Below, piece by piece: positions 12,301 through 56,450 of a DNA stretch of 64,000 bases. Position numbers and translations under genes: made by a program. The notes under the pieces are model-generated. The model was not told the DNA's origin. It searched no databases and was given only the letters and a program-made list of their open reading frames with translations. The stretch is from NCBI GenBank assembly GCA_004431415.1, contig QPMI01000634.1, positions 1 through 64,000 on the forward strand, in the 5' to 3' direction. Numbering within the stretch: the stretch's first letter is position 1; each line of letters begins with the position of its first letter. The stretch comes from Cyanophora paradoxa CCMP329 (lineage: Eukaryota; Plantae; Glaucophyta).

Positions 12301-13706
12301 TGGGTGAGGGAGTTTTAGAAATTAATCAAAGGGCAGCAGCAAAGAATATTCACAATGAGACCATATCAAGAGTGGTCACAGAGGATTACCTTCAAGCCCG
12401 AAACTACATAGATGAAACAGAACTGAATACAGTCATTGCAGGTATAGGTGTCACAGGAAATTACCTCCCTCTCACAGGTGGGATTATTAATGGAACAGTG
12501 ACAGCATGCAACTTCTTTGTCCATACTGAAAGTAATCAAACTTTCCCTGTTGTCCATCCAGGAGGTGAGTATGAGATACCAGATGATCCAGCTATAATGC
12601 CTATCAAGATCGATCTCCCTTCTGATTATGTTGGAAGGGGTGAACTGAAAACCATCTCTTTCACAGGAGATTATAATGATCTCCTGAATAAACCTTCAGC
12701 TGCAAACCTGCATCCTGTTGCTTATTCAGGTAGCTTCCTTGATCTTAATAATAGATCACACACTCACACAAAGGCAGAAATTACAGATTTCGCACACACT
12801 CACACCAAATCCCAGATAACAGATTTTGCCCACTTCCACACCAGAGCAGATATAACTAATTTTGCTCACACTCATTTTAAATCTGAGATAACAGATTTTG
12901 CTCACACTCACACAAAGTCACAGATAACAGATTTTGCCCACACTCATACTAAGGCAGAGATTACAGATCTTGGAAATGTCTCTTATGTGGGTCACACTCA
13001 TACTAAGAGTGAGATAACAGATTTTGCACACACCCACACCAAAGGTGAAATTACAGACTTTGCACATACTCATACTAAATCTCAAATTACAGACTTTGCA
13101 CACACTCATGTTTGGGTAGATATTACAGATCGACCTTCTCTTGATCCCTTCACAGCAAATACAATCACAGCAAACAATACCATGTATGCAGGATCAGGTT
13201 CCATTCTAAATTATGACCCATACATTATGCCTGATCCTCCTCTCATTTGGAATTTCCACAATTCAACACTTTCTACAAGTCATATATCATATTATCAGGA
13301 TAAAACACTCCTAGTTCGTGGAAATGCATATGCAAGAGAAATGTGGGTCATGGATCCTCGGGACAATTCAAAGGTTACTAAGCTGGCACCCCAATACATG
13401 CTTGATAACCTTATTAGAAAAGGGAGACATGAGATGACAATTGCAAACCCTCAAATTGGTGGTAGTTCAGCAAGGCAAAACCACACAATTACTCTGAGTT
13501 GGAGTCCTGCCTTTGCCACTCCCCCATCTGTTGTTGTGACATTGCAGGGATTACCTGCAACAAATGTAGAAATCGACTACAAAATAGGGATATCAAGCAA
13601 CTCAACAACCTCAACCACAATTAACCTTGTTATTTGGGCAGCAGGATGGGTAACCATTCAGCCACAGTGGCTTCAAATTGCAATCCATTGGATAGCATCA
13701 GCATAA
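9333..13706 (+). CDS. Large virion fibre-like protein with phage-tail-type HxH repeats
   Basis: About ten HTHTKSQITDFA repeats (12758-13130), HxHxWxxIxxKPxxFPP repeats and acidic EEYLPDGxDP repeats. Also an internally duplicated ~180-aa block and a C-terminal beta domain (FATPPSVVVT). Confidence 0.8.
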   Translation: MSFNYPPNLETIQDDNASSTKHVNFDNIKVKGSVSIDHSSDNSSKTQSREHALSVNQTDPDKEEVSVAFSLGNVKANQVAEIKATRRRPRKLKTSGTHPDIPSRFDSGRLIFNVQDEQGKQNTALRIYNEGSTAKAEVPQVLQVGPIANTNQVSYTNDVYPKDITYDFARNEPFGFFTPKDVHQKKPSITINSSPSQPVAIHLHPDLVEMDRHLLPLYSNVKDLGIRTRQWRNIHGSNVYANGEKLVSEKTLREIIEHYGPNGPTVPFPIPFPNGPPDLTPKKQPGREYTATEDVAFGQHIVSWEQVRNKPIIEPRKQIDEQYLPPEVDILELDEYQFVPDEEEYLPDGFDPQEYEYDQFDPNEEEILPDGLDPQEFEYEQNYEPDEEYLPDGHDPPAVDYEQPYEPHEELLPDGFRPEIWEFFPDYEQINNKPAKYPPEDHNHDWDEILGKPQKYPPEDHRHDWGEIDGIPTEFPPSKHEHTWDEINDQPEFAKVEPLDNLGVSLYQTCNVPERIFLNEHYVHVNGTLANSAMRGPLHIRTLPGSYNPPPEPGATIPNIFVSSYMEADIPTDTFRVPTDPATYQNFNSAIQVHVADVSSLDGSRPMIVFSRDKYSYIPIVGTANDNYGRAELAWIKTDYGGVLEANQRMAAKNIHNENISRVVTEDYLTAVVLVNIVTLAMLANYVTKNELALELSKYLLKTGGTITGDLTVTSNLYTSNLYASNITVDYLTVTSNANLPHHPTSNVVDGWIKNHTHTKDQIIDFDHTHAWSNIVDKPLTFPPDDHTHAWSNIVDKPITFPPDTHTHDYTQITNCNHRHPWSEIDQQPKFASAGNLLTDSPHGVSLYQSNAIPERLQLNDYYVNRKGIDAGTTMEGELYIRPPTRMQMIAAGGNFGALDTKPGIYLTSYYADDIPMTGGLLSLPSDPVNYDDKDAAIQINVTDVSDLDGSRPKLIFSRERLLPDALLGNRDDYKRCEMAWIKTNYNGGVGEGVLEINQRAAAKNIHNETISRVVTEDYLQARNYIDETELNTVIAGIGVTGNYLPLTGGIINGTVTACNFFVHTESNQTFPVVHPGGEYEIPDDPAIMPIKIDLPSDYVGRGELKTISFTGDYNDLLNKPSAANLHPVAYSGSFLDLNNRSHTHTKAEITDFAHTHTKSQITDFAHFHTRADITNFAHTHFKSEITDFAHTHTKSQITDFAHTHTKAEITDLGNVSYVGHTHTKSEITDFAHTHTKGEITDFAHTHTKSQITDFAHTHVWVDITDRPSLDPFTANTITANNTMYAGSGSILNYDPYIMPDPPLIWNFHNSTLSTSHISYYQDKTLLVRGNAYAREMWVMDPRDNSKVTKLAPQYMLDNLIRKGRHEMTIANPQIGGSSARQNHTITLSWSPAFATPPSVVVTLQGLPATNVEIDYKIGISSNSTTSTTINLVIWAAGWVTIQPQWLQIAIHWIASA

Positions 13707-13731
13707 TAAAGATTCTCACACTATTACAAAG

Positions 13732-14805
13732 ATGACCTCTCTATTAGAGATCCCAAACTATGAACTTGCAGCCAAATCACTCCATAGCACCTCTCATGGA
13801 GTAGTTGATTCAACCCCTGGGTATATTTGCACTGAAACTTCAAGTAATACCTCTTTCACAGAGAATGATAAACTCAGAGTCAAAGAAATTCGATGTGATC
13901 GCAATGGGGGCAAGATAAGAACCACAGGGATTATTATCTCGAATAAAAATCAGGTTCAAGCAGGTCAAGTTGTCCCAGATTCAGCAATATATGATAATGT
14001 AGGTGGATTTACCACAGCACAGATAGTTACTTTTGGTAACACAAGTAATAATTCTGCACTTGTGGTTAAAAGTGGAGGAGCCTATATTGGTGATGGAGCA
14101 ATTGTGGTGGGGGCTGTCACAGCAAATCAGTTGACTGTGAATGGGACAAGTAGTTTTGGTGGGTATATGACTTTCAATGGTGGGCTTTCAGGGAGTATTC
14201 AGTATGGAACTCTCACACTTTCCACAAGAATCAACACACCTGAAATAAATACAATCTTGAACACAAATTCTACATACAAACGAAATGGTAAGTCGATTTT
14301 TATATTAGGGAATATACAGACGACACCAACCAATATAGAAGCACTGACATTTTCAACAGGATGTTATTTGAAAAGAAATGGATGTCCTCGTTTTCTGGCT
14401 GGTAAATCAACAAATTGGAGTTTTTTAGCGAACAATTCACACATTCGTCCCTATACAGCAACTGGACTAATAAATAATGGAAATGCATTCGATATTACGA
14501 CTGGAACTTTTACAGCTCCTATAACTGGAACTTACCGGTTCTTTTTTGGTGGAAATTTCAATGGTACTGACACATTCCCATCAACTGTTATTTTCAATCT
14601 TAGAAAGAATGGACTATCTACAACACTTCAGACATCTACAACAAATGATTATTCAACAATGCAAATTCATTTCTCAATGGACTGCATCATTAATCTCATT
14701 AAAAATGACTGGATTCGAGTGTATAATAATTCTTCGGATATTGTTGAAATAGGTTTTACTGGGAATCAATTTTACTTTGGGGGAATGCTGTTAAGTGTTA
14801 CATAA
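13732..14805 (+). CDS. Fibre protein with C-terminal C1q/TNF-like head
   Basis: PRFLA...NNGNAFDITTGTFTAPITGTYRF...LRKNG...IINLIKNDWIRV is C1q-like; N-terminal domain shared with the next three fibres. Confidence 0.8.
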   Translation: MTSLLEIPNYELAAKSLHSTSHGVVDSTPGYICTETSSNTSFTENDKLRVKEIRCDRNGGKIRTTGIIISNKNQVQAGQVVPDSAIYDNVGGFTTAQIVTFGNTSNNSALVVKSGGAYIGDGAIVVGAVTANQLTVNGTSSFGGYMTFNGGLSGSIQYGTLTLSTRINTPEINTILNTNSTYKRNGKSIFILGNIQTTPTNIEALTFSTGCYLKRNGCPRFLAGKSTNWSFLANNSHIRPYTATGLINNGNAFDITTGTFTAPITGTYRFFFGGNFNGTDTFPSTVIFNLRKNGLSTTLQTSTTNDYSTMQIHFSMDCIINLIKNDWIRVYNNSSDIVEIGFTGNQFYFGGMLLSVT

Positions 14806-14826
14806 TATTATCATTATAAAGTAAGA

Positions 14827-15846
14827 ATGTCTACACAAATTGCAGTTCCTGTTTTCTGTTATGCTGCCCCTAAATTACATCAACTTAACCACACAGTCAC
14901 AGATGCAACCCCTGGTTTTATTTGCACAGAAACAACAGGAGCCGATTCGTTTTCGCAAAATTCTGTGATAAGATGCAAAGAAATTCGATGTGATCGGAAT
15001 GGAGGCAAGGTGAGAACCACTGGACTAATTGTGTCAAATAAGAACCAAGTTCAATCAGGTCAGATTGTTTCTGATTCCGCAATTTATGATGATGTTGGAG
15101 GGGTCACCACACCAAAACTTGTAACTTTCGATAATACAATAAATAATGCTGCTCTTGTTGTGAGAAGTGGAGGCGCATATATTGGAGATGGGGCGAGAGT
15201 TGATGGAACTCTTACAGCAACTCAACTTGCAGTGACAGGGACAACTACTTTTACAGGAGTGGTAACAGCAACTGGTGGGATCTCATTACCAACAGCCTCT
15301 CAATCTGTCATAACTGCAACCACAAGAGTAGTAACACCTGAAATTGACACAGGGGCTGATGTTAATTTAATTTTAAAGCGAAATAGTAATCCAATAGCAA
15401 CTTTAGAATCGAACTGTTTAACAATTAATACGAACTGCTATTTAAAGAACACTTTTCAACCGAGATTTAGCTATCAACTGGGATATAATCACACTGCTAC
15501 AAGCTCTGCTGCTCTCATTAATTGGGTCACAAATATTGTTGATCAGACAGGCGCTTTTAATGTCACCAATGGAAGATTCACTGCTCCTGTAGCTGGGCAT
15601 TATCGTTTCTCAGTTTATACACAGTCAACAACAGCAGCTGCAATTCAGATTTATTTAAAAGTAAATAACCTCGATCCAGGGATGATCCTAACTACACAAA
15701 GCACCAGCACAGCAGCTGTTAAACCCCTTCAATTAACAGCCATTCTAAATGTTGCAGCCAATGAGCATGTCACTGTGTGGACAGGAACCTCTGGGACATA
15801 TTCATCTGCAACAGTTTTCAGTGGAGAGTTGATAAGTATCACATAA
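14827..15846 (+). CDS. Fibre protein with C-terminal C1q/TNF-like head
   Basis: GAFNVTNGRFTAPVAGHYRFS...ILNVAANEHVTV...FSGELI; N-terminus highly similar to 13732-14805. Confidence 0.8.
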   Translation: MSTQIAVPVFCYAAPKLHQLNHTVTDATPGFICTETTGADSFSQNSVIRCKEIRCDRNGGKVRTTGLIVSNKNQVQSGQIVSDSAIYDDVGGVTTPKLVTFDNTINNAALVVRSGGAYIGDGARVDGTLTATQLAVTGTTTFTGVVTATGGISLPTASQSVITATTRVVTPEIDTGADVNLILKRNSNPIATLESNCLTINTNCYLKNTFQPRFSYQLGYNHTATSSAALINWVTNIVDQTGAFNVTNGRFTAPVAGHYRFSVYTQSTTAAAIQIYLKVNNLDPGMILTTQSTSTAAVKPLQLTAILNVAANEHVTVWTGTSGTYSSATVFSGELISIT

Positions 15847-15867
15847 TTTTCTCTCTATGGAGTAGGA

Positions 15868-16134
15868 ATGTCGAATATATACCAAGTGGTTCTCTCTGAT
15901 AGCGAAAAGCTCGGAATGGAATATTGCTGCGCTTCGGTTCAGGATTGGATTGATAATGCTGTTCACAACAGAGCAAGAATCGCAATTGATGATATTGTTC
16001 AGAAAGAGATTCAATCTTGCATCTCATCAGGAGTTCAGATACCAACCTCAAAAGAAGCCATTGTTTTACAGGCATTCCAAAGGGGAACTGTAAAGAAAGG
16101 CATCGAGTATAATAATGTCACAGAAGGACAATGA
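15868..16134 (+). CDS. Small phage-type fibre-associated protein (possible assembly chaperone)
   Basis: YQVVLSDSEKLGMEY...VQDWIDNAVHNRARIAIDDI...IPTSKEAIV resembles small proteins I recall following C1q fibres in aquatic tailed phages. Confidence 0.6.
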   Translation: MSNIYQVVLSDSEKLGMEYCCASVQDWIDNAVHNRARIAIDDIVQKEIQSCISSGVQIPTSKEAIVLQAFQRGTVKKGIEYNNVTEGQ

Positions 16135-16169
16135 ACATTATTTTTCTTTCCTTCTTAGTAAAAGAAGCA

Positions 16170-17015
16170 ATGGGTGAATATAATCGAGTTCAACTGCCTA
16201 TATATTCCCTGGGATCCCCTGCAATGCATTTTCGCCAGCATGAAGTAAATGATGAGGTTCGTGGTTTAGAATCTACAGAGAGACCCAATTCCAATGGTAA
16301 CTCATTTGATAAAAATTCGATTATTCGAGTTAAAGAGCTGAGAGCTGATAAGAATTCAGGTGTGGTTAAAACAACTCGACTTCTTGTCACAAATGCAAAC
16401 TTCTTTCAGCCTACCAATGGAGGTCCAGATGCTTACAGTGTTGATCTGAAAGCCCTTGATTTCGATAAGAATTCTGCAGCTGTCACTGTGAGATCAGGAG
16501 GAGCATTTATTGGGGGTGGCTGTCGAATTTCAGGTCAGCTTTCATCCTCAATTTCGTATAATGATGTCCCAGATACTCTAGAGCAAAATGTGGAAGACCC
16601 CCAACGAATTCGATTATATACTCCTGTCGCACAGCAGCCATTAATTCAATTTTACATTGGATATACTGTTACTCTTGAAAACTCGGAATTAATTGAAGGA
16701 ACCAAAAGAGTACTGAGAGGTCTTGCGATTCCATCTGCAATGCTTTCCCTTTGTAGAGCCAACAACAATCAAGTAGGTCATAAATACTATTTCAATGTTC
16801 AGGGATATAATCATTTCGGTTATGGCTACTGTGTTTATAATAATAATTTCACCTTTGACTTGTTTGTTACAGATATTGGGTTATATACTATAACTCTTAT
16901 CGGTTTGAGAACAGATATAGCCGCTGTATCAGCTCTTAGAGGTGTAACTCCTGATACTCTTTCAGTTACAGGGTTTTACCAAGAGCCAGATGTAATTGAT
17001 GACCCAACCCCATAA
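16170..17015 (+). CDS. Fibre paralogue 3 (shared N-terminal domain, different head)
   Basis: IRVKELRADKNSGVVKTTRLLVTNAN...VRSGGAFIG matches the family N-terminus. The likely start is the ATG at 16170, not 16131. Confidence 0.7.
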   Translation: MGEYNRVQLPIYSLGSPAMHFRQHEVNDEVRGLESTERPNSNGNSFDKNSIIRVKELRADKNSGVVKTTRLLVTNANFFQPTNGGPDAYSVDLKALDFDKNSAAVTVRSGGAFIGGGCRISGQLSSSISYNDVPDTLEQNVEDPQRIRLYTPVAQQPLIQFYIGYTVTLENSELIEGTKRVLRGLAIPSAMLSLCRANNNQVGHKYYFNVQGYNHFGYGYCVYNNNFTFDLFVTDIGLYTITLIGLRTDIAAVSALRGVTPDTLSVTGFYQEPDVIDDPTP

Positions 17016-17038
17016 AAGATATATCCCTTTAATGTAAA

Positions 17039-17872
17039 ATGGCTGAGCAACCCCCACTTGAACGAATTATTACACCTCAGCTATCATTAGCTGCCCCAGC
17101 AAACCATGTTTTACAGCATGCTACTTTTGATGATGTGGAAGGTCTCCAATCCACAGAGGTCCAACCTACAATGAACACCTTTGGTTCCACCCACAAGCTG
17201 AGATTACAGGAACTCAGATGTGATAAAAATAATGGAATAGTTAAGACAACTAAGCTACTTGTCACAAATGCAAACTTCTCTGCTCATTATGGAGACCCAG
17301 ATAGCTATGGAGATCCTCTGTCTACTTATTCTTTTGAATCTAGGTCGGGAGCTATTAACTGCAAATCGGGGGGAGCTTATATTGGTGATGGTCTTAGGGT
17401 TGGTGGGGCTGTTGGAGCGCCTCTATTTGTGAATGATCAACCCAATCCCATTGATCCCAATACAAGAATTCGAACATATGTCCCCAGCATGAATGCCCCC
17501 TATATAATCAAGATATTCCCCATTGTTGTGAATGAACAAACAGCAGTAGTAGATTCTCTTGTTGAGATTGGTGACCACTACAAGGTTGTTGTGGATATTC
17601 CACCAGATGTATATGCTCTATGTCAAGTAGAGGGTGGAACTCCTAATTTTGCTGTTGTGATCACCCCATATGATAATTTCGGAATTGCTTATCATGGAGT
17701 CAATTTCGGTTTGGAAGACTATCAGTTTCTGGTTAGAGCCACCAAGTTTGGTATCTACAAGTGTGTATTATATGCTGAGAGAACCGATTTTATTGCAAAG
17801 CAGAATACCTATGCTGAATACTATGGGACAAATCGATATTTCCCCATTTTTGGGCAGGATACTGCTCCATAA
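17039..17872 (+). CDS. Fibre paralogue 4 (shared N-terminal domain, head related to paralogue 3)
   Basis: LRLQELRCDKNNGIVKTTKLLVTNAN...KSGGAYIGDG; C-terminus YDNFG...GIYKCVLYAERTD resembles YNHFG...GLYTITLIGLRTD of paralogue 3. Confidence 0.72.
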   Translation: MAEQPPLERIITPQLSLAAPANHVLQHATFDDVEGLQSTEVQPTMNTFGSTHKLRLQELRCDKNNGIVKTTKLLVTNANFSAHYGDPDSYGDPLSTYSFESRSGAINCKSGGAYIGDGLRVGGAVGAPLFVNDQPNPIDPNTRIRTYVPSMNAPYIIKIFPIVVNEQTAVVDSLVEIGDHYKVVVDIPPDVYALCQVEGGTPNFAVVITPYDNFGIAYHGVNFGLEDYQFLVRATKFGIYKCVLYAERTDFIAKQNTYAEYYGTNRYFPIFGQDTAP

Positions 17873-17894
17873 GAATATTGGTTATATATAGAGT

Positions 17895-18167
17895 ATGGAT
17901 AGTAAAACAAAAAAGTTTATTGATGCTGCTATGACAGTCCATGGTAAAGATAAATTCGATTACAGTGAGACACATTACATCAAAGCTCAAGAGAAAGTAT
18001 CTGTTAGATGTTTGCAGTGTAATAAGGTGATCCTTACCTATCCCTTTAATCATGTGAAGGGATCAGGTTGCAGGGACTGTAACAAAAGAAAGAGTCAAGC
18101 ACACAGGAAAAGAGCTACTTCATCAATCAGAGTAGAGTATAGGGATATTTGCATTAGGTTTGACTAG
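17895..18167 (+). CDS. DUF723-like zinc-ribbon protein
   Basis: FIDAAMTVHGKDKFDYSETHY...VRCLQC...NHVKGSGCRDC. Confidence 0.65.
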   Translation: MDSKTKKFIDAAMTVHGKDKFDYSETHYIKAQEKVSVRCLQCNKVILTYPFNHVKGSGCRDCNKRKSQAHRKRATSSIRVEYRDICIRFD

Positions 18168-18190
18168 TTAATTTTTCTAAGGTATTCTTA

Positions 18191-18589
18191 ATGGAGACTA
18201 AATACAGAGGCTTTCATGTTATGCTTGATTACAAGGCTAAATCAGCTATAGCAACAGGTTATGAGCATGTTAGCTTCCTAGGTAATTGGATTATGGGAAC
18301 CCTTGAACAAGCAGTATTGAGACAAGGTATTAGGATTGTTCATAAGCATTGTGAGATATTTGATGGCAAACTATCACCTCCTGGTTTTGCATTGGTTCTG
18401 CTATTAGATGAAAGCCATTGTACAGCTCATTGTTATTCCAATGAAGGCATGTTAGCAATTGATATATTCAGTTGTGGTAAAGAAGCTCAGCATAAAACAC
18501 AATCAGTAGCAGATGAGATCGATAAAACAATGAATTTCTTAACATTTGAGAAGACTGAGAGACATAAACATGATAGATTCCCGTTTTGA
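18191..18589 (+). CDS. speD: S-adenosylmethionine decarboxylase proenzyme (short prokaryotic/viral type)
   Basis: GFHVMLD, PPGFALVLLLDESHCTAHCY (E-S self-cleavage site, ESH motif) and AIDIFSCG; 132 aa. Confidence 0.85.
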   Translation: METKYRGFHVMLDYKAKSAIATGYEHVSFLGNWIMGTLEQAVLRQGIRIVHKHCEIFDGKLSPPGFALVLLLDESHCTAHCYSNEGMLAIDIFSCGKEAQHKTQSVADEIDKTMNFLTFEKTERHKHDRFPF

Positions 18590-19008
18590 TGGGTTTCTAT
18601 AATGATAAACAGGGTAATTTACCTTTTTTATTACAATGGCAATCGTTAAAAAAGGATATAATATATCCTTTCCTACAATAGCTTTCTACAATGATTTTCT
18701 TTCTACAGTAGCTTTTGTTACAATAGAATTCTACTGTATGATGTAGCCGAAATATGAATGCACCCTACATTAAGCAATGTCAAGTATTTCGAATACTATT
18801 CGATTTCCTTACAATAACACTCAGCATCTGCCCTAGATTCCCCCTATTACCCTATTATTTAAGTGGACTCAAGGTTGACTCATATTAATCGTAAAAGTAG
18901 TAAAAGTATATGGATTTTGTTACGAATTCAATGGGAGGGTTGACTAAGTGGGTTGAGTTGACTCAAATTTCACAGGAAATAACAATGAATCAGAGTATAA
19001 ATGCATTT

Positions 19009-19039
19009 TTTGAATCAACTACACCAACTAACACTGAGA
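19009..19039 (+). repeat. 31-bp direct repeat, copy 1 (TTTGAATCAACTACACCAACTAACACTGAGA)
   Basis: Identical copy at 28389-28419; each copy precedes an iteron module. Confidence 0.85.
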
Positions 19040-19319
19040 AAGTAGAAGATATCATATAGTATTACCATATATGGTTTGTCAGGCACTATAATATAGTTGT
19101 CAGGCACTTATATAGTATGTCAGGCATTGAGGAGATTGGTACCCCGGAAAATTGAGCGAAGGCCCGCGAGCGAGTAAGCCGGCGCAGTGGGGCTTCCCCA
19201 ACGCGGGTGCCTGCTAGCACTGCACGTGGCTGGTCCCAAAACTCGCGCGGCCGACGCTCCGTAGTCCAGCCCGACCGAACTCCAAACCCAGCGAACATCG
19301 ACCGCCCAGCCGCGGCCCC

Positions 19320-22300
19320 ATGCCCGCCACCTCAGCGGAGACAGCAGCCACACCGTCGGATGCGCCCCCGGACGCACCGACGCCCCGCCCGCTGCTCACG
19401 GTCGCCTTTTTGAATGTCGAAAGCCTTGCAGGCATACCTCGGCGCATCTGGCTCACCGGATGGCTCAAGCGTACCAAAGTGGACGTCCTCGGCATCGTTG
19501 ACCACCGGCTCAATCCGAAGCAGATCGCGGCCCTTACGCAGCGCATCGAATCATCGTGGCGCGTGCTCATCCCGCCCGCCGCAGAGCTTAAACCCAACGT
19601 CTGGAGCCGAGGCACCGGTTTCCTCGTCCGCAAAGCCATCCCGGCCCTCCCCGGTGCTACAGCCACGCTCGTGCCCCTCCCGCCCACGCCGGGCCTGCGG
19701 CCGCACGATGCTTCACTACTTCGCCTCTCCAGCGACACCAACGCATACAGCATTATCTGCCTCTACGCCCCTAATGACGCGGCCTCGCAGAAGCGCCTGG
19801 CGGCAGGCGTCACCCAGGCGATCGAATCGCTCCAGCTTCCCCCGAACGACGCCCTCATTCTAGGCGGCGACCTAAACGCCTACGCGCTCCCGCATTTAGA
19901 AAGCCGCCGCCGTGCCGGCGCACCGCCCCCCTTCGGGCACTGGTCCGATCTCATGGCTGACTTGGACCTGTTCGACGAACATCGCCGCAGGCGGCCGCGA
20001 GACCGCATATACACGCGCTGGCACCGCAAGACGAACCGCTTCGACCAGAACGCGGCGCGACTGGACTACGTCCTCCTCTCAGCCGACCTCTGCGTCGCGG
20101 CGGAGCGCGTCGGTATCCTTCGCACGGCGGGCGCGGCCCCGCGCCCTGACCACGACGCGGTCTACGCGCGGCTCCATACGGACGCCGTCATCGCGCCCCG
20201 GGCGGCCCGCTTCAGGCTCCACGACCGCATCCTCCACTTCCCGCCGTTCCAGCGGTCCGTGCGGGCCTGCACGGCCGAAGCGCTAACTCGCCAGCCGGCT
20301 CTCTGCACCGTGGAGTGGCAGCGCTGGCTCGACGAGCTCTTCGCTGAATACAGGGAGATCGCCCGCCGTACCCGCCCCCAGGCTGACTCGGAGGTCCGAG
20401 ACGCCCGCGAAGTGATCGCAGGCCTCTGGCGCGACGCGGAACAAGCGCTCCAAGACGCGGAGGTAGACACCACCGAAGAAGACTACGCGGTCGCCGATAT
20501 GGGCTACCTGACCATCCAGGAAGCAGCGCTCGACGCCGCAGACGCGGCTCTTAGCTCCCGCAAGCACCTAGAACGCTCCCTCGCGCACGCGCACACAGTC
20601 CCCCCCGAGCTCGCCCGTCATATTAAGTACTCCTCGGCCGACAACCGTATGCGCTCGCTGCAGCCGTACCCCCCGCGAGAGGGTACCCCGGCGGCCACGA
20701 CGGAGGAAGACATGGCGGCGCACGCCTGCGCATACTACACGGAGCTCCTCGCGGCCCAACGCCCGCTTCCCCCCGACCTCCCGGCGGCCACGCCGCCCTC
20801 GGCTCCGGCGGCCCCGGCCCGCCGCCAAGAACCACGGGCAACGGAGCATTCCAATGCTCGCCCAGGCACCACCACGGGGTCGGAGCCTGAAGGCGCTCGC
20901 CCGTACCAGGGAACGGCTAGGCCGAACCCGCAGACCACGGGGCCCGAGCCGGAAGGCGCTCGCCCGTCCTTGGAACCGGGAGCCTCGGGCCCCGTGGACG
21001 TGACGCCGGAAGCCACCGCCGCTTTCCCGGCGGTCGTCGAGAAGCTGCGCGCTGCCCACCTTCTCACCCCCGCCGACCCCCTCACGTGTGAGGAAGCCGA
21101 GCTCTTGTCCCGCTGCCTCGATACAGCGCCCCCGCCCTTGCACCCCCCGATGTGCGCCCCCTATACGGTTGGCGAGATCGAGGAAAGACTAAAAGAGATG
21201 AATAAGTCGACAGCGCCGGGCGAGGACGGCCTCTCTGTAAAGTTCTATCTCACGTTCTGGAACATCCTCGGCCCGATAGTCACAGAAAGCTATAACTGCG
21301 CGCGCGCGCTGGGCACCCTATCGGAGCGCCAACGCACGGGGCTAATCCAACTGCTCTATAAGAAAGGAGACCGCGATAAAATCCAGAACTGGCGCCCAAT
21401 CACCCTCCTGCAAATAGACCGCCGCCTCTTCGGAGCGGTTCTCGCGAAGCGCATAGCGCCCGCCTGCCAGCACACTATCAGCTCCGTCCAAACGGGCTTT
21501 ATGCCGGACCGCACCGGGGCAGACAACGTCTGGCAGATGCAAGCCGTCATCCGTCACGCGGACCGTACGGACCAGCATGTCGTGATACTAAACACCGACT
21601 TCGAGAAAGCGTATGACCGCGTAGAACACCTCTATGCGCTCCGGGTCCTAGCGGTCCAGGGCTTCCCGCCCGAATTCCTCGCCGACGTCCGAGCTATCAC
21701 GAAAGGCGCTAGATCAAAAGTTATGATCAACGGGCAGATCTTCCCAACCATCATCCCGGTTACGCGCAGCGCTCTCCAGGGCGACCCATTCGCATGCATG
21801 TTCTTCAACACGCAGCAGGAGCCCACCACGCGAGACATCCTCGCGGACCCCGAAATCACAGGCGTACCCGCCCCTCGGGACCCCGGGATCGAATCCAAGC
21901 TGGTCCAATACGCCGACGACGCAGCGCACTCGCTCAAGATCAATCCCCGCAGCCCAGACCCTGGCCTGCCCGTTAAGAAAACCATAGCTAAGTACCAGAA
22001 AGCAGGGAAGTACAACGGCTCCTCGCTCAATCTCGGCAAAACCGAAGGCATGCTCGCGGGAGCCGCAGCACCGACAAAGCGGCCCGGCCACCCAATCACC
22101 CTCCCAGCATGGACCCAAGCGATTCCGATCCGCTGGGTCAAGTCCACGTCCACGCTCGGTATCCCGCTCGGCCCGAGGGGCGAATTTGACGCCCGCCCTT
22201 ACTGGGCTAAGCGTGTAGACGGGATGCGCAGCCGGAGAGCTCGCTGGAACCTGCGCGCGATGCGCGTCCACCAACGCGTCAACGTAGCCACGGCCATCGT

Positions 22301-24329
22301 GGCGTCTGTTAATATGTACGCGGCCGCGTTCCTTCCGTGCCCCCCGTCGGCCCTCCAAGCCATTAAGGACGAATACTGGGCAGCAATATGGCCCTCGTCC
22401 GCAGATGCACCCGCCCGGAAGCGCAGCGCGCGCGGCCGGATATCACGAGCGAAAGCTGTCCTCCCACCGTCCAACGGCGGCCTCGGAGCACTCGACCTTG
22501 AGAGCCGCCTCCTGGCGCAAGCAGGCACGTACATTCGAGCGCTCTGTGACCCCTCCTTCGCGGTTTGGAAGCTTTTCGCCGCAGAAGAGATGCAGGAACT
22601 AGTGCCCAAGAAATACGCGGCGGCCGCGCAGGCCCTCGGCCTCAACGCGCTGGGCGCCGACCTCCGCTTCCGCCCGTATGCAGCCCTCCTCCCTGCTCAG
22701 GGGCCCCTCGCACCAGCGGTGCGCATCCTCACGCTCCTACGACCCCCGGAATCGGGCCCGACCCCCCTCCGGTGCCCGCCGCACCGCGCAATCGCGTCCC
22801 TGCCGCTCACGCGGGATCGCCTCAGGGCGGAGCCGCTCTGGCTCAACCCGGTGCTCGCCCCGCCTGGCCAAACCTGGGGCATAGGCAAAATTGATGAAGC
22901 CCTCGCCGCCCGGCTCACTGCCGCCCACCAGATCACCGGCCCCGCGCCCCAAGACCTCTCCCAGGCCGCGTACACGCGCCTGAATGAAATCCGCGCCCAG
23001 GTCCGCCTTCGCGCAGCCCAGCTCGGCCTCGCCCCTCTCGACACGCCCCCCCAAGCTATCCTCCCCGGGGCCGACCCTCGGATATGGCTGATCGCAGCCC
23101 CAGCAGAAGCTGGCGCTGGCCCCAGAAGGCCGCGCTCAGGCCCGATCATCTTCGCGACCCCAGGCACCCCGCCGCTGGGCTGCACGACCAGCACAATGCC
23201 CGACGGCACCATAGTAGGCCCGCCCGGCCCCCCCGCGCCCCTCCCAGCCGCCCCCGCGCTCCTCCCCCGCGCCCTGATCATCGCCGTCCCACCGGGGTCG
23301 GCGAAACAAAAAGCCCGGTGGCCAGACGGCCGCGCCGTGACCGCGGGCCGCCTCGACCGCGCCCCCTGGATCCACACCGGGCTCCTCTACCGGACCCCGA
23401 CCGGCCCCCGCCCCTGGCTCCACTACCGCATCTCGGCGGGCTACCGCGCCCTCCGGGCCCAGCCCCCCCGCCCGGCCCCCGGCCCTCTCGCCCGCTTCGG
23501 CCCCCCGCCCCCCGGCAAATGCTGGACCCAGGTGTGGGGCGCGGGCACGCAACATGCCCACCTGTCCCCGTGGAACCGCGAGACCTGGCTCTGGGCCACC
23601 CACGCTTGCCTCCCCGCCGGCCAATTCCTTTTCCATATTGGGGCTCGCCCGACCCCGTTCTGCTGCGCCTGCCCCGGCTCCGATGTACCCCCCGATACCT
23701 CGGACCATGCAGTCTTCTACTGCGAGCCCGCGCGCGCGGCCTGGGAGGAACTGCTCGATAGGTGGAACGATTTCTACGGCACCTCTATCCCCCTCGAATG
23801 CGCGCACGCCCTCACCGGATTCCTAGCCGTCCCAGAAGAGCTTAAAAAGCGCCGCACCGGCTCCGCACGCCAGAGACGCGAATTCCGCATGCCTCGTAGC
23901 CTGCTAGCGGCCCTGGCGGGCCTCATGATCAGCGCTGCATGGTCAGCCCACGTCCGCGCCATCCAGGACAACGCCCCCGACAGCACCGACAACACGCCCC
24001 GCCGCCCTACCAAGAAATCGATCTGGCAAGCATTTGAGCGCGCAGTCTGGGCCCGCACCCTCCTAGAGCAGAGCAAGATCGAGCTCGCCACCCGGGGCCT
24101 CCCCCAGGACGCGACGCAGCCAACTTTAGACCCGGACACAGTGGCCTGGAACTGGGAGCCGGCCGACCCCGACGCGCCCCCGGACGCCCCGGCACCCCCA
24201 CTCCCCCAGGCGCTCTGGACGGCAGACAGCTTCATTGCCACAGCCCACCGCTCAGCACACGAAACAACCCTCACCCGCGGGCCCCTCCTCGACCCGCCGC
24301 CGGACTCAGACCCCGACAGCGACGACTGA
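19320..24329 (+). CDS. ORF2-type protein: APE endonuclease, reverse transcriptase and C-terminal zinc finger
   Basis: APE: FLNVESL, LYAPN, GGDLNA, RLDYVL, PDHDAV. RT: APGEDG, NWRPITLL, QTGF, DFEKAYDRV, LQGDP, YADD, LNLGKT, LGIP. Zn finger: CCAC...DHAVFYC. 1669 aa, uninterrupted. Confidence 0.95.
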   Translation: MPATSAETAATPSDAPPDAPTPRPLLTVAFLNVESLAGIPRRIWLTGWLKRTKVDVLGIVDHRLNPKQIAALTQRIESSWRVLIPPAAELKPNVWSRGTGFLVRKAIPALPGATATLVPLPPTPGLRPHDASLLRLSSDTNAYSIICLYAPNDAASQKRLAAGVTQAIESLQLPPNDALILGGDLNAYALPHLESRRRAGAPPPFGHWSDLMADLDLFDEHRRRRPRDRIYTRWHRKTNRFDQNAARLDYVLLSADLCVAAERVGILRTAGAAPRPDHDAVYARLHTDAVIAPRAARFRLHDRILHFPPFQRSVRACTAEALTRQPALCTVEWQRWLDELFAEYREIARRTRPQADSEVRDAREVIAGLWRDAEQALQDAEVDTTEEDYAVADMGYLTIQEAALDAADAALSSRKHLERSLAHAHTVPPELARHIKYSSADNRMRSLQPYPPREGTPAATTEEDMAAHACAYYTELLAAQRPLPPDLPAATPPSAPAAPARRQEPRATEHSNARPGTTTGSEPEGARPYQGTARPNPQTTGPEPEGARPSLEPGASGPVDVTPEATAAFPAVVEKLRAAHLLTPADPLTCEEAELLSRCLDTAPPPLHPPMCAPYTVGEIEERLKEMNKSTAPGEDGLSVKFYLTFWNILGPIVTESYNCARALGTLSERQRTGLIQLLYKKGDRDKIQNWRPITLLQIDRRLFGAVLAKRIAPACQHTISSVQTGFMPDRTGADNVWQMQAVIRHADRTDQHVVILNTDFEKAYDRVEHLYALRVLAVQGFPPEFLADVRAITKGARSKVMINGQIFPTIIPVTRSALQGDPFACMFFNTQQEPTTRDILADPEITGVPAPRDPGIESKLVQYADDAAHSLKINPRSPDPGLPVKKTIAKYQKAGKYNGSSLNLGKTEGMLAGAAAPTKRPGHPITLPAWTQAIPIRWVKSTSTLGIPLGPRGEFDARPYWAKRVDGMRSRRARWNLRAMRVHQRVNVATAIVASVNMYAAAFLPCPPSALQAIKDEYWAAIWPSSADAPARKRSARGRISRAKAVLPPSNGGLGALDLESRLLAQAGTYIRALCDPSFAVWKLFAAEEMQELVPKKYAAAAQALGLNALGADLRFRPYAALLPAQGPLAPAVRILTLLRPPESGPTPLRCPPHRAIASLPLTRDRLRAEPLWLNPVLAPPGQTWGIGKIDEALAARLTAAHQITGPAPQDLSQAAYTRLNEIRAQVRLRAAQLGLAPLDTPPQAILPGADPRIWLIAAPAEAGAGPRRPRSGPIIFATPGTPPLGCTTSTMPDGTIVGPPGPPAPLPAAPALLPRALIIAVPPGSAKQKARWPDGRAVTAGRLDRAPWIHTGLLYRTPTGPRPWLHYRISAGYRALRAQPPRPAPGPLARFGPPPPGKCWTQVWGAGTQHAHLSPWNRETWLWATHACLPAGQFLFHIGARPTPFCCACPGSDVPPDTSDHAVFYCEPARAAWEELLDRWNDFYGTSIPLECAHALTGFLAVPEELKKRRTGSARQRREFRMPRSLLAALAGLMISAAWSAHVRAIQDNAPDSTDNTPRRPTKKSIWQAFERAVWARTLLEQSKIELATRGLPQDATQPTLDPDTVAWNWEPADPDAPPDAPAPPLPQALWTADSFIATAHRSAHETTLTRGPLLDPPPDSDPDSDD

Positions 24330-24350
24330 GGCCGCGGCGCCCGGACGCCG

Positions 24351-25145
24351 TCACTCCCAGGGGCACTTCAGCCCCGCCGGCCGCTCATGCGCGATCGCCT
24401 CCAGCCCGTTCGCGGCCGTCCCATCACCTTCCTGCGGACGGGGCAGAACAATGAGAGAAACAACGGGACCAGCTGCAGAGCCCCGCTGCGCACCAGGAAG
24501 TCCATCGCTTGATCGACGGTGAGGAACCGCCGAGAGTCCCGACCCCGGACCCCCGGCACCCGCCACACCTGGGCCAGAGCGCACTCCCGCCCCGGATAGG
24601 TCTCCGTCTGATCCCTGAGCGTAGCGCGAGAAGACGGCCCCCAGCGTGACCGGCGACACCGCGTCATAAGCGCTGACGAAATCCGCAGCACACAGCGCGC
24701 GAGGCGCAGCTGCGCACCAGATCGAGTAAATCCCGGGCCGAATCCCATGGCGCACTGCATAAAACGCCAGCGTACTCTTCTTCGCGACCTGCGAGCACCC
24801 AGGGTAGGGCAGCTCGTAGAAGTACGCCCGTACTACGCCATCACGAAACATCGCGGCCGCGGCACGCAGATGCCCGCGGAGCGTCCTCAACATCGGGAAA
24901 GCCGCAGGCACGACCTCGCCAGGGCTCGAGCCGGCGCTCCCAACTACGACAGCGTCGTCCGCAAAACCGCTTAGAACCTCGCCATCGCTCAACTCGGCTG
25001 CAGCCGGGGTCGCAGAAACGCGGTCTTCGCCAACCGCAGCCCGCTTCGCCGAAGGCTCACCCGCGGACGACTCACTCCCGCTACGCTCCCGCTTGCAATC
25101 CGCCTCGCAGCCGGGGCCCGGCGCTCCCTCGGGCATATCCGCCAT
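24351..25145 (-). CDS. Spliced antisense gene encoding an RNase H1 N-terminal hybrid-binding / caulimovirus viroplasmin-like domain
   Basis: Removing GT-AG introns 24717-24615 and 24493-24432 gives FYAVRHGIRPGIYSIW-DQTETYPGRECALAQVWRVPGVRGRDSRRFLTVDQAMDFL-EGDG...CPWE*. Confidence 0.75.
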   Translation of the reverse strand: MADMPEGAPGPGCEADCKRERSGSESSAGEPSAKRAAVGEDRVSATPAAAELSDGEVLSGFADDAVVVGSAGSSPGEVVPAAFPMLRTLRGHLRAAAAMFRDGVVRAYFYELPYPGCSQVAKKSTLAFYAVRHGIRPGIYSIWCAAAPRALCAADFVSAYDAVSPVTLGAVFSRYAQGSDGDLSGAGVRSGPGVAGAGGPGSGLSAVPHRRSSDGLPGAQRGSAAGPVVSLIVLPRPQEGDGTAANGLEAIAHERPAGLKCPWE

Positions 25146-25284
25146 CGCTCCAATGCAAACTAGACCCCACCCCCCCCCTCGGGGGGTACAAGCCCCTCAA
25201 TCATGGCCTAGTCCCAGATCCCCCCCTAGATCCCCATACCGGGGACCCCGGCGCTCATTCCCGCCAAGGCACCCCGTTGCGACG

Positions 25285-27627
25285 ATGGCGTTCGTCGCCC
25301 CCGCCCTTCCCGCTGCGCCTACGGGCCTCATCAAGCCCTTCCTCGTCAACGCCGCAAGGCCGGTCTCGCCCAAGGCTGTCGTCGCCGCCGCCGCCGCGGC
25401 CCGCACGTCGACGTCGTCTCCACCCGCGTCGCCGAAGCCCGCGCGCCAATCCTCCTCTAAGTCGAACGAGAGACTGAAGGAGAAGCAAGCCGCGCAAGCG
25501 CCGCCGCCGCCGGCGCCGGCCGAGGCCGGCCCGTCCAAGGGAACTAAGGTGAATCCCGTGCTGGCCGCGCCGAGCCCGGCGCTCACGTCCCCCAAACAGG
25601 GCCGTGGGCGTCCGAAAAACTCCAGCCAGCCCAAGCGCGCCTCGCCGCGGACGCAGAAGAAGGCGACGGCCCCAACGGCGCCGGCTCATGACGAGGACCA
25701 GGCGAGGCCCATCCCTCATACCCGAGCATCGCGCGCACTAAACAGAGATTATACGCAGCCCGATGAGCGGCAGCCGCTCCTCCAGGAGGCGCTGCCCGTG
25801 CCTAAGCCGCTGCCGACCAAGGCCCCGCCGGCGCCCCGCAACACCAAGCGCGGCAAGATGCTCACAGACCGGTCGAAGCGCACTCTCGTGCTGTCAAAGC
25901 TCAAGGCCGACGCCGCCGTCCTTTACGACAAGGAGCTAGTGCGCGCACCCGCCCCGAAGGCCGCGCCTCTAAAACCTGATCCCCGGCCCGGAACCGCGCT
26001 CGCAGTACAATAAGCTGATGAAGTTCGGCGACGGCGTCGATTTCACCAAGTTCCCGGACCTCGTCGAGGCGGATGGCACGCTGCGGCAGGACTACCTCGA
26101 GATCATCGCGAACAAGGCCCTCGAGGCGATCGGCTGGCTCGAGCGCGCCAGCCCCGTCATGACGGAGGTCTACCTGATCGGCCGCCACAAGAAGGTGGCC
26201 CTCCTCCACCTCACCGACATCGAGGTCTCGATGGAAATGAACCGCGAGCTCCGCACCCGCTTCCCCGACGCGCGCGGCTGCCTCGCCGAGATCGAGCTCG
26301 CCCTCGGCCACGCGCACCGCACGCTCAAGGTACGCCGTCGCGCGCGCCGAGTGCGCGCACGTGCCGACGCTGGGCCCCGGCCCGCAGATCCGCTTCTGCC
26401 AGGACCTCTCCGTCGCGAGCCGCCACGCGGTCTACGCCGGCCTCACCGACGAGCAGCGCGAGCTGGGCTGGTCCTACCGCATCTTCTGCGGCATCCCGGG
26501 CGTCTACACCGACGAAGCCTTCGACGAGATGGCCCGGGTCCGCATGCCGAGCCTCCGCTAGCCCAGATAAAGAAAGATAAAACCGAGCCTAGCTATGGCC
26601 CAACCGCCGCGCGACCCCGCCTAAGCCCCGGCCCGTCTGCACAGTCGGTCTGGCTCGAGCCCGCCGTCGTCGACGGCAAGATCAAGACCGTGAACCTCAC
26701 GGCCGACAAGCCCCGCCGCTTCAAGCGCGACGGTGACAACATCGCCGTCCTGGGCAAGGAGATGGAGCCCGTGCCGGACTCCGACGACTCCGAGGGCGAG
26801 GAGCAGGAAGTCCGCGCCCCCACTATACCCCGCCCGACGGCCCGGTACCCCCTCCGCTCACACACGCGAGGCAGACGCTCTACCCCGACTCGGTGGCCCT
26901 CGAGGCCACCAAGAACAGCAAGAAGATCTCCCGGGAGCACCGCATCAACTACCCCGACGGGGTGGGCGGCCGCGCGTCCTACCGCCCCGGCCACTCCACG
27001 GGCGCACGCCGGCTCAACCGCCTCAGCGCCCTCAACGAGGACAAGACCCCCGAGGAGGCCGCCCAGATCGCGGCGGACCTCGCCGCCCAGTCCCGCAAGC
27101 GCGCGATTGAGCGCTTCGGCCCCGACGCCGTCAAGAAGCGCAAGGGCGGCGCCGCCGCCCCCGCCCCCGCCGCCGGGGCCGCCGCCGCCGCCCCTCCGCC
27201 GACGCCTCCGCCGCCGCCGCGGCCGCCGCCGCCGCCGCTGCCGTCGCCGCCGCCGCCGCCGCCGCCGCCGCCCCGGCGCAGGCCGCCGCCCCCGCGCCCG
27301 CCCCGGGCCCGGCTCCCGCCCCCGGCCCCGGGCCGGCCACCATCTCGCTCACCAACTACCAGGCGGCCCAGCGTGTGCTTGCCGAGCTCACCTCGGCCCT
27401 CGGGGGCCCCGCCGCCATCGAGGCCCTCCTGGCCGGCCGCCGGGCGGCCGCCGCCGACAACGCGGCAGCGTAGACCTCCCCCCTCTTTTCGATCCCAACG
27501 GCCTCGGCCCTTTCGCCCTTTCGGCCTCAGTCTCCTTTTTCACTTTTCTCTCTTTACAATTCGCGGTAGCACGACTGCCAAAGAAGGGGGCCTCATGACG
27601 AGCCCACCGCCCCCCTCTCTGAGTTAG
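25285..27627 (+). CDS. Spliced gene, ORF1p/gag-like candidate with two RRM-like segments (3' end uncertain, 27473-27627)
   Basis: Phase-0 GT-AG introns at 25939-26005, 26330-26387, 26538-26644 and 26810-26874 join the frames: RTLVLSKL...DKEL|YNKLMKFG...KVALLHL...TLK|IRFCQD...YRIFCGIPGVYTDEAFDEMAR|SVWLEP... Confidence 0.7.
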
Positions 27628-28388
27628 ATAGCTCCATGAAGCAATGTCACCTCCCTACCCCGCCCCCGCGCAAAGCCCTGCCCACCTGCGGGCCCGCCCC
27701 CTCCTAAAGCTTTTCCCCCGGCCCAGAAGCTAGTGACAGACTAGCCCCACGGCCGGTACCCCCGCCACGCCCCTCTGTCCCCCGAACACACTAGGGCGCC
27801 CACCCCGCTCGCAACCGACCGCCCCCGCAGCCCCCCCCGATAATGCCTCTCACCAGGACCACATACTCCCCGCGCCCCACACGCCATAAAAAGAAGGGGG
27901 CGCGCCCGCTACCCTAGCCCGCGCCGCCCCCACCCCCCCCTCCCCACCCCTCTTCCCCGCCCGATAAGATTGGCCTCCTCGGCGCCGACGACCCCCCGCA
28001 CCTACACTCAAGAACACGACAAACGACCCCCTACCACGCCTCCACCCACAAGAGAAACGCTCAGCTGTAGCGTCGAGGCGCCTATCCCTGTGTTCCGGCC
28101 TCAGGTTATGCTCTGACCCAGAGTTCGGCCTATTCCGAACCGGTAGTGCGTACGATGATGTTACTGAACAAATACAATCGCCACCGCCCTTGATATGGGC
28201 TTTGTGAAAAAAAAAGTATGTCAGGCATTGTCAGGCACCTTTTTAGAAAACTTTTCTATAATTCAAATTTCATTGTTGATCCAAACAATGACTTTGCCAA
28301 AATAAAATACTTTGTCAAAATCGATGGATTTAATGCCTGACAAATAAATGCTGCCTGAAAGATTTTAAATCACATTCCTAAGATCACA

Positions 28389-44106: not shown

Positions 44107-44345
44107 AAGGCGGCGGCGCGCGAGGGCGCCTATAGCTAGCTGATCTAATTTTTTTTATAAGCCTTGGGGAGGCGGCTTCATGATCAGTACTGCGGTATGG
44201 TCGTGATTGAAATGAAGTGACAAAATTTTTGAGGCGAACGCGGTGCGCATATTACCTAACTGGCAATGCCTGCATGTTACACTTGTACGCTAGCGGGGGC
44301 CGGTTAACCTGCCTAGATGCGCGGAGGCGAATACGAAACTTTATG

Positions 44346-56399: not shown

Positions 56400-56450
<51 letters not shown>

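Follow-up and report, generated by a model that had tools for sequence, protein, structure and literature searches.

APE-type LINEs use their own transcript as the template for copying, are generally intronless, and carry ORF1 before ORF2. A locus in the glaucophyte Cyanophora paradoxa CCMP329 has a reverse transcriptase ORF near its 5′ end and two predicted intron-bearing genes behind it, and it was described in a preliminary account as a LINE with reversed gene order, the ORF1-like gene coming last. This raises the question of whether the genes belong to the element and, if so, whether either of them is an ORF1. The window analyzed here is the first 64,000 bp of contig QPMI01000634.1 (assembly GCA_004431415.1, forward strand), and all coordinates refer to it.

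A single 9.1-kb insertion in a tandem repeat

Positions 19130–28215 of the window are a single target-primed LINE insertion of ~9.1 kb (9,086 bp). The 15-bp target-site duplication (TSD) and the A-tail originally proposed to bound one unit were both recovered, the TSD measuring 16 bp with the final A of the tail included and 15 bp without it, and the tail being only nine residues long (Table 1). GC content steps from ~0.40 in the flanks to 0.66–0.72 inside the unit (~68% overall). At window positions 1540–1760 there is a paralogous empty site, in which the repeat continues across the junction and the 16-mer occurs once. The single 16-mer at the empty site indicates that the TSD is a true duplication, not a coincidental match within the local 21-bp tandem repeat, where the one insertion site that we saw is located. 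Taken together, the TSD, the A-tail, the GC step, and the paralogous empty site led us to read the whole 9.1 kb as one insertion, with the A-tail and the TSD, checked against the empty site, as hallmarks of TPRT. The TSD and the empty-site paralog also rule against an assembly chimera. Two nested insertions were considered and rejected, as neither a second TSD nor a second A-tail was found.

A BLASTN search of the element against the window revealed no second copy, returning low-complexity GC-rich matches only, and Rfam and tRNA scans of the window gave no matches. The target was probably a short tandem repeat within a low-GC, virus-like region. Scanning IMG/VR with the patatin gene of the flank gave no matches, and the long ORFs of a GC-rich block at 44–58 kb had no Pfam match.

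Table 1. Features of the inserted element, its target site, and its predicted genes (window coordinates)
Feature	Position	Strand	Details
Left TSD copy, AGTATGTCAGGCATTG	19114–19129	.	identical 16-mer at 28215–28230; single copy at empty site
5′ UTR, 190 nt	19130–19319	+	stops in 3/3 frames, no ATG, GC 0.67
APE-RT ORF (ORF2-type), intact, 1669 aa	19320–24329	+	Exo_endo_phos and RVT_1 above Pfam cut-offs
APE domain in ORF2	~19452–20117	+	Pfam; motifs
RT domain in ORF2	~21369–22160	+	Pfam; YADD at 21909–21920
Cys/His motif CX2CX11HX4C, ORF2 C-terminal	23661–23723 (residues 1448–1468)	+	motif
3′ module	24330–28215	both	3,886 bp; gene A (–) and gene B (+), head to head
Gene A	24351–25145	–	exons 25145–24718, 24614–24494, 24431–24351; ATG at 25145
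Gene A intron 1	24717–24615	–	103 nt, GTGCGC...CAG
Gene A intron 2	24493–24432	–	62 nt, GTGCGC...CAG
Spacer between gene A and gene B start codons	25146–25284	.	139 bp; presumed shared promoter
Gene B	25285–27473	+	ATG at 25285, stop 27471–27473
Gene B frame-changing introns	25939–26005, 26330–26387, 26538–26644, 26810–26874	+	GT-AG
Gene B further in-frame predicted introns (uncertain)	25290–25358, 25549–25599, 25702–25758	+	
AT-hook GRGRP in gene B	25600–25614	+	
(CGC)n tract in gene B	27150–27330	+	
Conserved tail exon of gene B	~27324–27470	+	frame relative to preceding exon: see text
3′ UTR, C-rich	27474–28206	+	GC 0.63, 43% C
A9 tail	28207–28215	+	only 9 A
Right TSD copy, AGTATGTCAGGCATTG	28215–28230	.	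matches left copy; empty site

An intact APE-RT ORF close to the 5′ end

The APE-RT ORF is uninterrupted and begins 190 bp inside the 5′ end, as had been noted before. Its N-terminal region matches Pfam PF03372 (Exo_endo_phos; 25.7 bits against a cut-off of 24.5, residues 45–266) and contains the motifs LNVESL, GDLNAY, and RPDHDA. The RT domain matches PF00078 (RVT_1) at 68 bits, with YADD at residue 864, whereas the Pfam zf-RVT profile reached an E value of only 0.52 on the C-terminal region. The closest solved structure was human L1 ORF2p (E = 1.7e-27), with R2 at ~1e-15. Paralogs of the ORF share 57–89% identity with it, and a metagenome scan with ORF2 alignment A3 found no relatives. The element is best explained as a recent, apparently intact non-LTR retrotransposon of the L1 superfamily, with APE, RT, and a candidate C-terminal Cys/His motif, which we consider likely. 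This copy has no upstream ORF1 within the 190 nt 5′ of ORF2.

Two divergent genes that would require splicing

The segment between ORF2 and the A-tail holds two head-to-head genes separated by 139 bp, in agreement with the divergent intron-bearing pair and ~140-bp intergenic region first proposed. We compared both genes with protein models from EukProt EP00741 (Cyanophora paradoxa), of which P0012 and P0013 were used unaltered. Exons were searched singly; the last two gene B exons were joined by script only to list frame-compatible introns. P0013 (tig00000137_g8148) is an exact match to the gene B exons of the window. Gene B paralogs with 27–75% identity align to the window exons in three different frames, and the conserved frames of both genes require GT-AG introns of 58–107 nt. 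The six frame-changing introns share the ends GT[GAC]CGC...CAG. Both genes would need splicing to yield the conserved proteins. The mean intron of the C. paradoxa genome is 86 nt (PMC6704402), and the density and lengths of the introns in the module are typical of the species. The claim that the element is intron-retaining holds for this retrotransposed copy, in which the introns are present, and one gene B intron position is apparently conserved across subfamilies that share just 31–39% identity.

Gene A lies antisense to ORF2, with its stop codon 22 nt from that of ORF2. Its sole paralog found, P0012 on tig00021015, is 73% identical. The protein scored 23.3 bits against the Pfam Cauli_VI profile (cut-off 21), with only the first half of the domain matched (profile positions 2–17 of 44, at the end of exon 1). 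Exon 2 by itself did not match Cauli_VI, and its segment RRFLTVDQAMDFL resembles the C-terminal helix by eye only; the comparison with PDB 1qhk gave an E value of 1.5. Gene A may thus carry a marginal motif of the RNase H1 N-terminal hybrid-binding (HBD) type, split by intron 1, and binding of RNA:DNA or dsRNA is a possible, putative function.

Besides an AT-hook, the gene B protein has novel domains that are conserved, a stretch of basic residues, and a C-terminal helix that is likewise conserved. Its GC3 is 0.93 overall and 0.96–0.98 in the core exons, compared to 0.78 for ORF2. Gene B had no Pfam match at E ≤ 1 and no match in a profile search against the PDB; AF2 produced a poor model (pLDDT 51.7), whose best Foldseek match had an E value of 0.25. 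A metagenome scan with one gene B exon did not detect relatives. In the window copy, the reading frame of the conserved tail exon does not continue that of the exon before it, and we found no canonical GT-AG intron that would join the last exons in frame while sparing the conserved KKRKGG. Gene B may therefore be damaged in this copy, or the (CGC)n tract may be mis-assembled. The last 167 nt of the 3′ UTR did not show a significant fold (z = –1.24).

Gene B follows ORF2 in gene models from other loci

Relatives of gene B are present on at least 15 C. paradoxa contigs, including tig00020734, 20572, 20904, 20965, 21758, 00383, 00555, 20603, 00203, 20911, 20560, 20542, 20960, and 20927. In gene models P0001, P0015, and P0019/P0056, ORF2 segments are joined to gene B exons on the same strand with ORF2 first. 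This linkage comes from Augustus models, in which deletions may have been bridged or segments joined wrongly. The two parts vary together: in its ORF2 part, P0015 shares 95% identity with P0001 and 86% with the window, and in its gene B tail, P0001 shares 94–97% identity with P0015 and P0014 and 73% with the window. Precisely where exons 5 and 6 meet, the models of subfamilies 3 and 4 have a break or an insert that is not conserved, and putative deletion derivatives retain the gene B tail and the 3′ end. At the level of predicted genes, these comparisons show that gene B is multi-copy and lies downstream of ORF2 at other loci, with subfamilies that co-vary, and other copies in the C. paradoxa genome seem to share the ORF2-then-gene-B layout. 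The number of contigs, the fused models, and the match of subfamilies on both sides bear out the 3′ module of the family-level architecture that had been proposed.

Neither downstream gene resembles ORF1

The idea that the ORF1-like gene had moved to the end of the element did not stand. Gene B has no sequence, profile, or fold match to ORF1p. In the closest LINEs outside Cyanophora, with 26–30% ORF2 identity, an ORF of 610–655 aa abuts ORF2 upstream (loci L002 and L003), and hhalign comparison of gene B with these ORF1s gave a probability of 0.1%, i.e., no similarity. Likewise, tblastn of both proteins of the module against L001 and L002, two loci of distant LINEs, found nothing. Since gene B is unlike any ORF1p and unlike the upstream ORF1s of these distant relatives, we no longer describe the gene order as reversed.

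Origin and role of the 3′ module

Our best explanation, which we consider likely, is that each unit of the family begins with a 5′ UTR and a single long APE-RT ORF, followed by the 3.9-kb module, in which a head-to-head pair of genes has introns in the style of the host. An ancient capture of host DNA, perhaps by read-through, is the probable origin of the module, which would now be reproduced along with the rest of the element whenever a full-length RNA that retains the gene B sense introns is copied. Because gene A is antisense, its introns cannot be spliced from such an RNA. Both genes would be expressed separately, either via the 139-bp spacer or by long-range splicing, and their products may replace ORF1p by binding nucleic acids, targeting AT-rich DNA, or countering RNAi, for example.

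The host-like character of the module could also reflect a single event, in which an ORF2-only or 5′-truncated LINE acquired 3.9 kb by 3′ transduction, or a nested or chimeric structure arose, and host genes were carried once. The intron density and lengths, the higher GC3 of gene B than of ORF2, and the dissimilarity of both proteins to known LINE proteins fit such an event, but the ORF2 stop is not followed by an internal A-tract, a TSD, or a spacer. Moreover, gene B forms a dispersed, deeply diverged family and is fused behind ORF2 in models whose subfamilies match on both sides, making a one-off 3′ transduction very unlikely. Retention of the introns, together with the presence of the spacer and of an antisense gene, excludes a chimera between a LINE and a processed mRNA. 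Another candidate is truncation of the window copy at its 5′ end, full-length members being organized as ORF1-ORF2 plus the 3′ module or simply as ORF1-ORF2. Truncation is common among LINEs, our DNA-level view is of one copy, and the normal upstream ORF1 of the nearest non-Cyanophora relatives makes a lost 5′ part conceivable. Five independent gene models from three subfamilies (P0001, P0002, P0057, P0003/P0058) nonetheless have the same initiator Met as the ORF in the window, the 190 nt upstream are stopped in every frame and ATG-free, and the break would need to have landed, by coincidence, immediately before an ORF2 that is intact. We therefore regard truncation as improbable.

It is also conceivable that the captured host gene pair travels with the family as a passenger and has no role in retrotransposition, the function of ORF1 being dispensable or supplied in trans. 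The host-like codon usage and intron structure, the dissimilarity to ORF1p and to the ORF1s of related LINEs, and the out-of-frame gene B tail in an otherwise intact copy would all be expected of cargo. Against this, the gene B protein is conserved among subfamilies to 31–39% identity while ORF2 diverges to 57%, and even the putative deletion derivatives still have the gene B tail and 3′ end. The persistence of gene B through many cycles of copying suggests selection within the element, and we consider a passenger role unlikely.

A more far-reaching version of the captured-module explanation is that the family represents a LINE lineage that has given up an upstream ORF1 and keeps, behind ORF2, a cassette of two spliced host-type genes, head to head and one of them antisense, with a deliberately unspliced 9-kb RNA as template and with expression of the cassette by an internal bidirectional promoter or by subgenomic splicing. 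In such a lineage, the AT-hook of gene B would steer insertion to AT-rich foreign DNA in a genome of 68% GC. The HBD-like motif of gene A would act on RNA:DNA hybrids, or gene A would act on dsRNA arising from convergent ORF2 and gene A transcripts. We put forward this combination only tentatively, as a possible arrangement.

Comparison with known retroelements

Literature searches did not find a prior description of this Cyanophora LINE. Like human L1, plant L1, and the Tx1 group, it has an N-terminal APE, a YADD RT, a candidate Cys/His motif near the C terminus, an A-tail, and a TSD of 15–16 bp. The window copy differs from these L1-superfamily LINEs in lacking an upstream ORF1 and in carrying a 3.9-kb intron-bearing module after ORF2, with one of the two genes antisense. 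L1 3′ transduction results from read-through into flanking DNA and similarly moves non-LINE, host-like sequence between ORF2 and the A-tail as one unit, so it is a plausible origin of the Cyanophora module. However, the module lacks an internal A-tail or any remnant of a source site, and it is conserved and co-diverges with ORF2 over subfamilies, hence our view of it as a stable part of the family.

Penelope-like elements are said to be highly unusual among retroelements for their retention of introns (PMC8557442). The Cyanophora element shares with them spliceosomal introns in retrotransposed copies, but it carries its introns in accessory genes, not in the RT ORF or the 5′ UTR, and it has an APE and an L1-like RT in place of a GIY-YIG endonuclease and telomerase-like RT. 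The Pfam domains found in it were APE and RVT_1; a GIY-YIG endonuclease and a PLE-type RT were absent. SymbioLINE-Dnmt of Symbiodinium is a LINE family with a stably incorporated non-canonical gene that is conserved over subfamilies (PMC5890265). That gene has no introns and sits upstream, in the place of ORF1, in contrast to the two spliced genes after ORF2, one of them antisense, in Cyanophora.

Retroviruses and other retroelements produce both unspliced genomic RNA and spliced subgenomic mRNAs. The Cyanophora element would face a similar situation, in that its sense-strand downstream gene needs splicing and its template must remain unspliced, although it lacks LTRs, gag, and integrase and integrates by TPRT. 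Antisense features are known in LINEs from the ORF0/antisense promoter of primate L1 and the C-module of Dictyostelium TRE5-A; these units are short, unspliced, or non-coding, unlike gene A, a three-exon gene that is 73% conserved in its paralog.

If our explanation is correct, a LINE can keep its genomic RNA unspliced while expressing spliced accessory genes, a solution like that of retroviruses, and ORF1p would be replaceable in a LINE. The locus documents LINE activity inside an endogenous virus-like region, in a barely studied, deep-branching algal lineage, and the Cyanophora element would offer a natural setting in which to study how the RNA that serves as template for TPRT is chosen.

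Integration of the element

The unit at 19130-28215 has a GC content of 66-72%, compared to ~40% in both of its flanks, and the 16-mer AGTATGTCAGGCATTG lies directly 5' of it and again directly after the nine-A run at its 3' end. Both flanks are parts of a ~190-bp direct repeat (83% identity between copies) that brackets ~17.6 kb of low-GC DNA, and its left copy was used as an empty-site control. When aligned, this left copy was uninterrupted across the junction and contained the 16-mer once, identifying it as a paralogous empty site and the duplication as a product of the insertion. A 21-bp tandem repeat inside the right copy served as the target. We conclude that the whole unit was inserted by target-primed reverse transcription, which bears out the preliminary description of a single unit with a target-site duplication (TSD) and an A-tail. 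The 64-kb window contained no second copy of the element.

The low-GC block around the element (35-46% GC) is dense in intronless ORFs and looks virus-derived; its identified ORFs are listed in the table. Farther downstream, a block of 72-85% GC carries long overlapping ORFs on either strand; it yielded no Pfam matches and no strong tandem repeats, and where it matched the Pro-rich part of gene B, the plus-strand gene of the element's 3' module, it did so only through low-complexity sequence.

Features of the window and of related contigs
Feature	Position	Strand	Remark
Low-GC block	1-19129 and 28216-~30000
~190-bp direct repeat, left copy	~1560-1751
~190-bp direct repeat, right copy	19048-19129 + 28216-28344
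A32-type packaging ATPase fragment	3871-4287	minus	low-GC block
Patatin phospholipase	8036-9289	minus	32% to Wolbachia phage WO patatin
Tail-fibre-like protein	9333-13706		1457 aa; low-GC block
C1q-domain proteins (two)	13732-14805, 14827-15846		low-GC block
AdoMet-decarboxylase-like ORF	18191-18589		low-GC block
21-bp tandem repeat	19067-19126		LINE target
16-mer, left and right	19114-19129, 28215-28230
ORF2	19320-24329		1669 aa, uninterrupted; Exo_endo_phos and RVT_1 exceed Pfam thresholds
Gene A, ATG to stop	25145 to 24353-24351	minus
Gene A introns	24717-24615, 24493-24432	minus	both GTGCGC...CAG
Gene B start	25285	plus
Gene B AT-hook GRGRP	25600-25614	plus	by eye; KRGRP in paralog P0018
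Gene B C-terminal exon	~27324-27470	plus	conserved
Nine-A run	28207-28215
High-GC block	44000-58000
Upstream ORF1s of metagenome LINEs	L002:1244-3211, L003:409-2241		610-655 aa, abutting or overlapping ORF2 start

The APE-RT ORF

ORF2, the APE-RT ORF, carries a YADD motif and a C-terminal CX2CX11HX4C motif, and its nearest relative among solved structures is human L1 ORF2p (E 1.7e-27); R2 proteins score ~1e-15. The 190 nt 5' of ORF2 contain no ATG and have stop codons in every frame, so the APE-RT ORF is the first cistron in this copy, at the distance from the 5' end that had been proposed. No A-run, spacer or second TSD was found 3' of the ORF2 stop. That stop is 22 nt from the stop of the antisense gene A (24329-24353), so the 3' ends of the convergent transcripts must overlap, which could give rise to dsRNA; overlapping 3' UTRs are reported to be common in the C. 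paradoxa genome (PMC6704402).

Two divergent intron-bearing genes

The proteins closest to the element are C. paradoxa gene models from EukProt (EP00741). Searches were made with individual exons and the unaltered models P0012 and P0013, never with a spliced model joined by ourselves. Genes A and B start 139 bp apart on opposite strands, in agreement with the ~140-bp intergenic region described earlier, and conserved reading frames require introns in both. For gene A (GC3 0.76), the conserved reading, taken from the 73% identical paralog P0012 (tig00021015), needs two frame-changing introns. The end of exon 1 matched the RNase H1 N-terminal hybrid-binding domain over its first half, at 23.3 bits (Pfam cut-off 21), and exon 2 was fitted to the second half by eye only, which makes the assignment of this domain to gene A marginal.

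The window encodes P0013 (tig00000137_g8148.t1) exon for exon, so the contig is nuclear DNA of C. paradoxa rather than human. Gene B has four frame-changing introns (67, 58, 107 and 65 nt), every one GT[GAC]CGC...CAG; the Augustus model has three more, in-frame introns, which are uncertain. Its paralogs (27-75% identity) align to the exons alone, in three different reading frames, and its GC3 of 0.93 (0.96-0.98 for the core exons) compares with 0.78 in ORF2. Together, these coding signatures indicate that the conserved gene B protein can be made by splicing only. By eye, we also noted a basic region, SRKR...KKRKGG, and a helix conserved at the C-terminus.

The conserved C-terminal exon does not continue the reading frame of the preceding exon. 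When the two were joined to enumerate frame-compatible intron candidates, no canonical GT-AG intron connected them without loss of the conserved KKRKGG; paralog P0015 reads straight through. Within a (CGC)n/Pro-Ala-rich tract (27150-27330), P0013 can be matched to the window only with four small frame changes, so either small indels separate the window from the model sequence or this copy is frameshifted. Possible causes of the tail mismatch are a frameshift of this copy, an indel introduced by sequencing or assembly, and a GC-AG intron with its end at 27281.

The 3' module as a family feature

A search of 1.84 billion representative proteins with P0013 found real relatives in C. paradoxa only, on many contigs, and at several divergence depths (63-87% and 31-41% identity); gene B is present on at least 15 contigs, the window included. 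Three kinds of published model fuse ORF2 to gene B, on the same strand and with ORF2 first: P0001 (tig00020927) runs from ORF2 residues 1-960 into the gene B tail, P0015 (tig00020572) from the RT region into gene B from the exon-7 acceptor on, and P0019/P0056, probably with P0025 (tig00000555, 20603, 20960), directly from ORF2 codon ~380 into the gene B tail. The short models of this last kind occur on two or three contigs and have the look of a non-autonomous derivative of the family that arose by internal deletion and was itself copied again. In its ORF2 part, P0015 shares 95% identity with P0001 and 86% with the window; across the gene B tail, P0001 shares 94-97% with P0015 and P0014 and 73% with the window. 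At the protein level, ORF2 and gene B subfamilies co-vary. In the two most distant subfamilies of the gene B protein alignment, models break exactly at the window gene's exon 5/6 junction, where g17141 and g17142 split one gene B relative into two adjacent models and other models carry a poorly conserved insert of ~42 residues. This is the pattern expected from an intron at that position.

The preliminary description named a one-off event as the finding that would overturn it. The fused models and the subfamily co-variation argue against such an event and show the module persisting across subfamilies; the evidence on linkage, co-variation and intron position is drawn from protein models, and the DNA seen is that of the window copy. 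Three genes in one intron-retaining unit that is not a one-off are supported, on indirect evidence. The suggestion that the last gene is ORF1-like fared differently, and nothing supports gene B as a displaced ORF1. Gene B had no match in Pfam, its family profile had none among PDB sequences, and its low-confidence AF2 model (pLDDT 51.7) gave no significant Foldseek match (best E 0.25); the tandem-RRM proteins scattered through that list do not count as evidence. The nearest non-Cyanophora LINEs, from metagenomes (ORF2 identity 26-30%, ~62% GC), have a conventional ORF1 directly upstream of ORF2; those on contigs L002 and L003 lack Pfam domains, share only weak similarity (29% over 92 aa) and show none to gene B (hhalign probability 0.1%) or gene A.

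Template, expression and origin

The copied template held the introns of both genes. Those of gene A are wrongly oriented in the sense LINE RNA, and are therefore unspliceable there and carried along automatically; those of gene B are sense-oriented, which implies a template that went unspliced. We infer that a full-length sense RNA with gene B introns unspliced was copied, and such an escape from splicing has a parallel in retroviral genomic RNA. Penelope-like elements have been described as highly unusual among retroelements in that they keep introns after retrotransposition (PMC8557442). Genes A and B could plausibly be expressed from the 139-bp spacer; alternatively, long-range splicing from ORF2 donors may serve, as the RNA-seq-guided fused models hint.

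In its intron structure and codon bias the module resembles the host, which suggests an origin as captured host DNA. In the published C. paradoxa genome, GC content is 67.6%, LINEs make up 2.47%, and introns number 9.2 per gene with a mean length of 86 bp (PMC6704402). A Symbiodinium LINE family has stably acquired a foreign gene (PMC5890265); that gene is intronless and upstream, whereas the Cyanophora module bears introns and lies downstream of ORF2. The element merits follow-up both genome-wide and at the transcript level.
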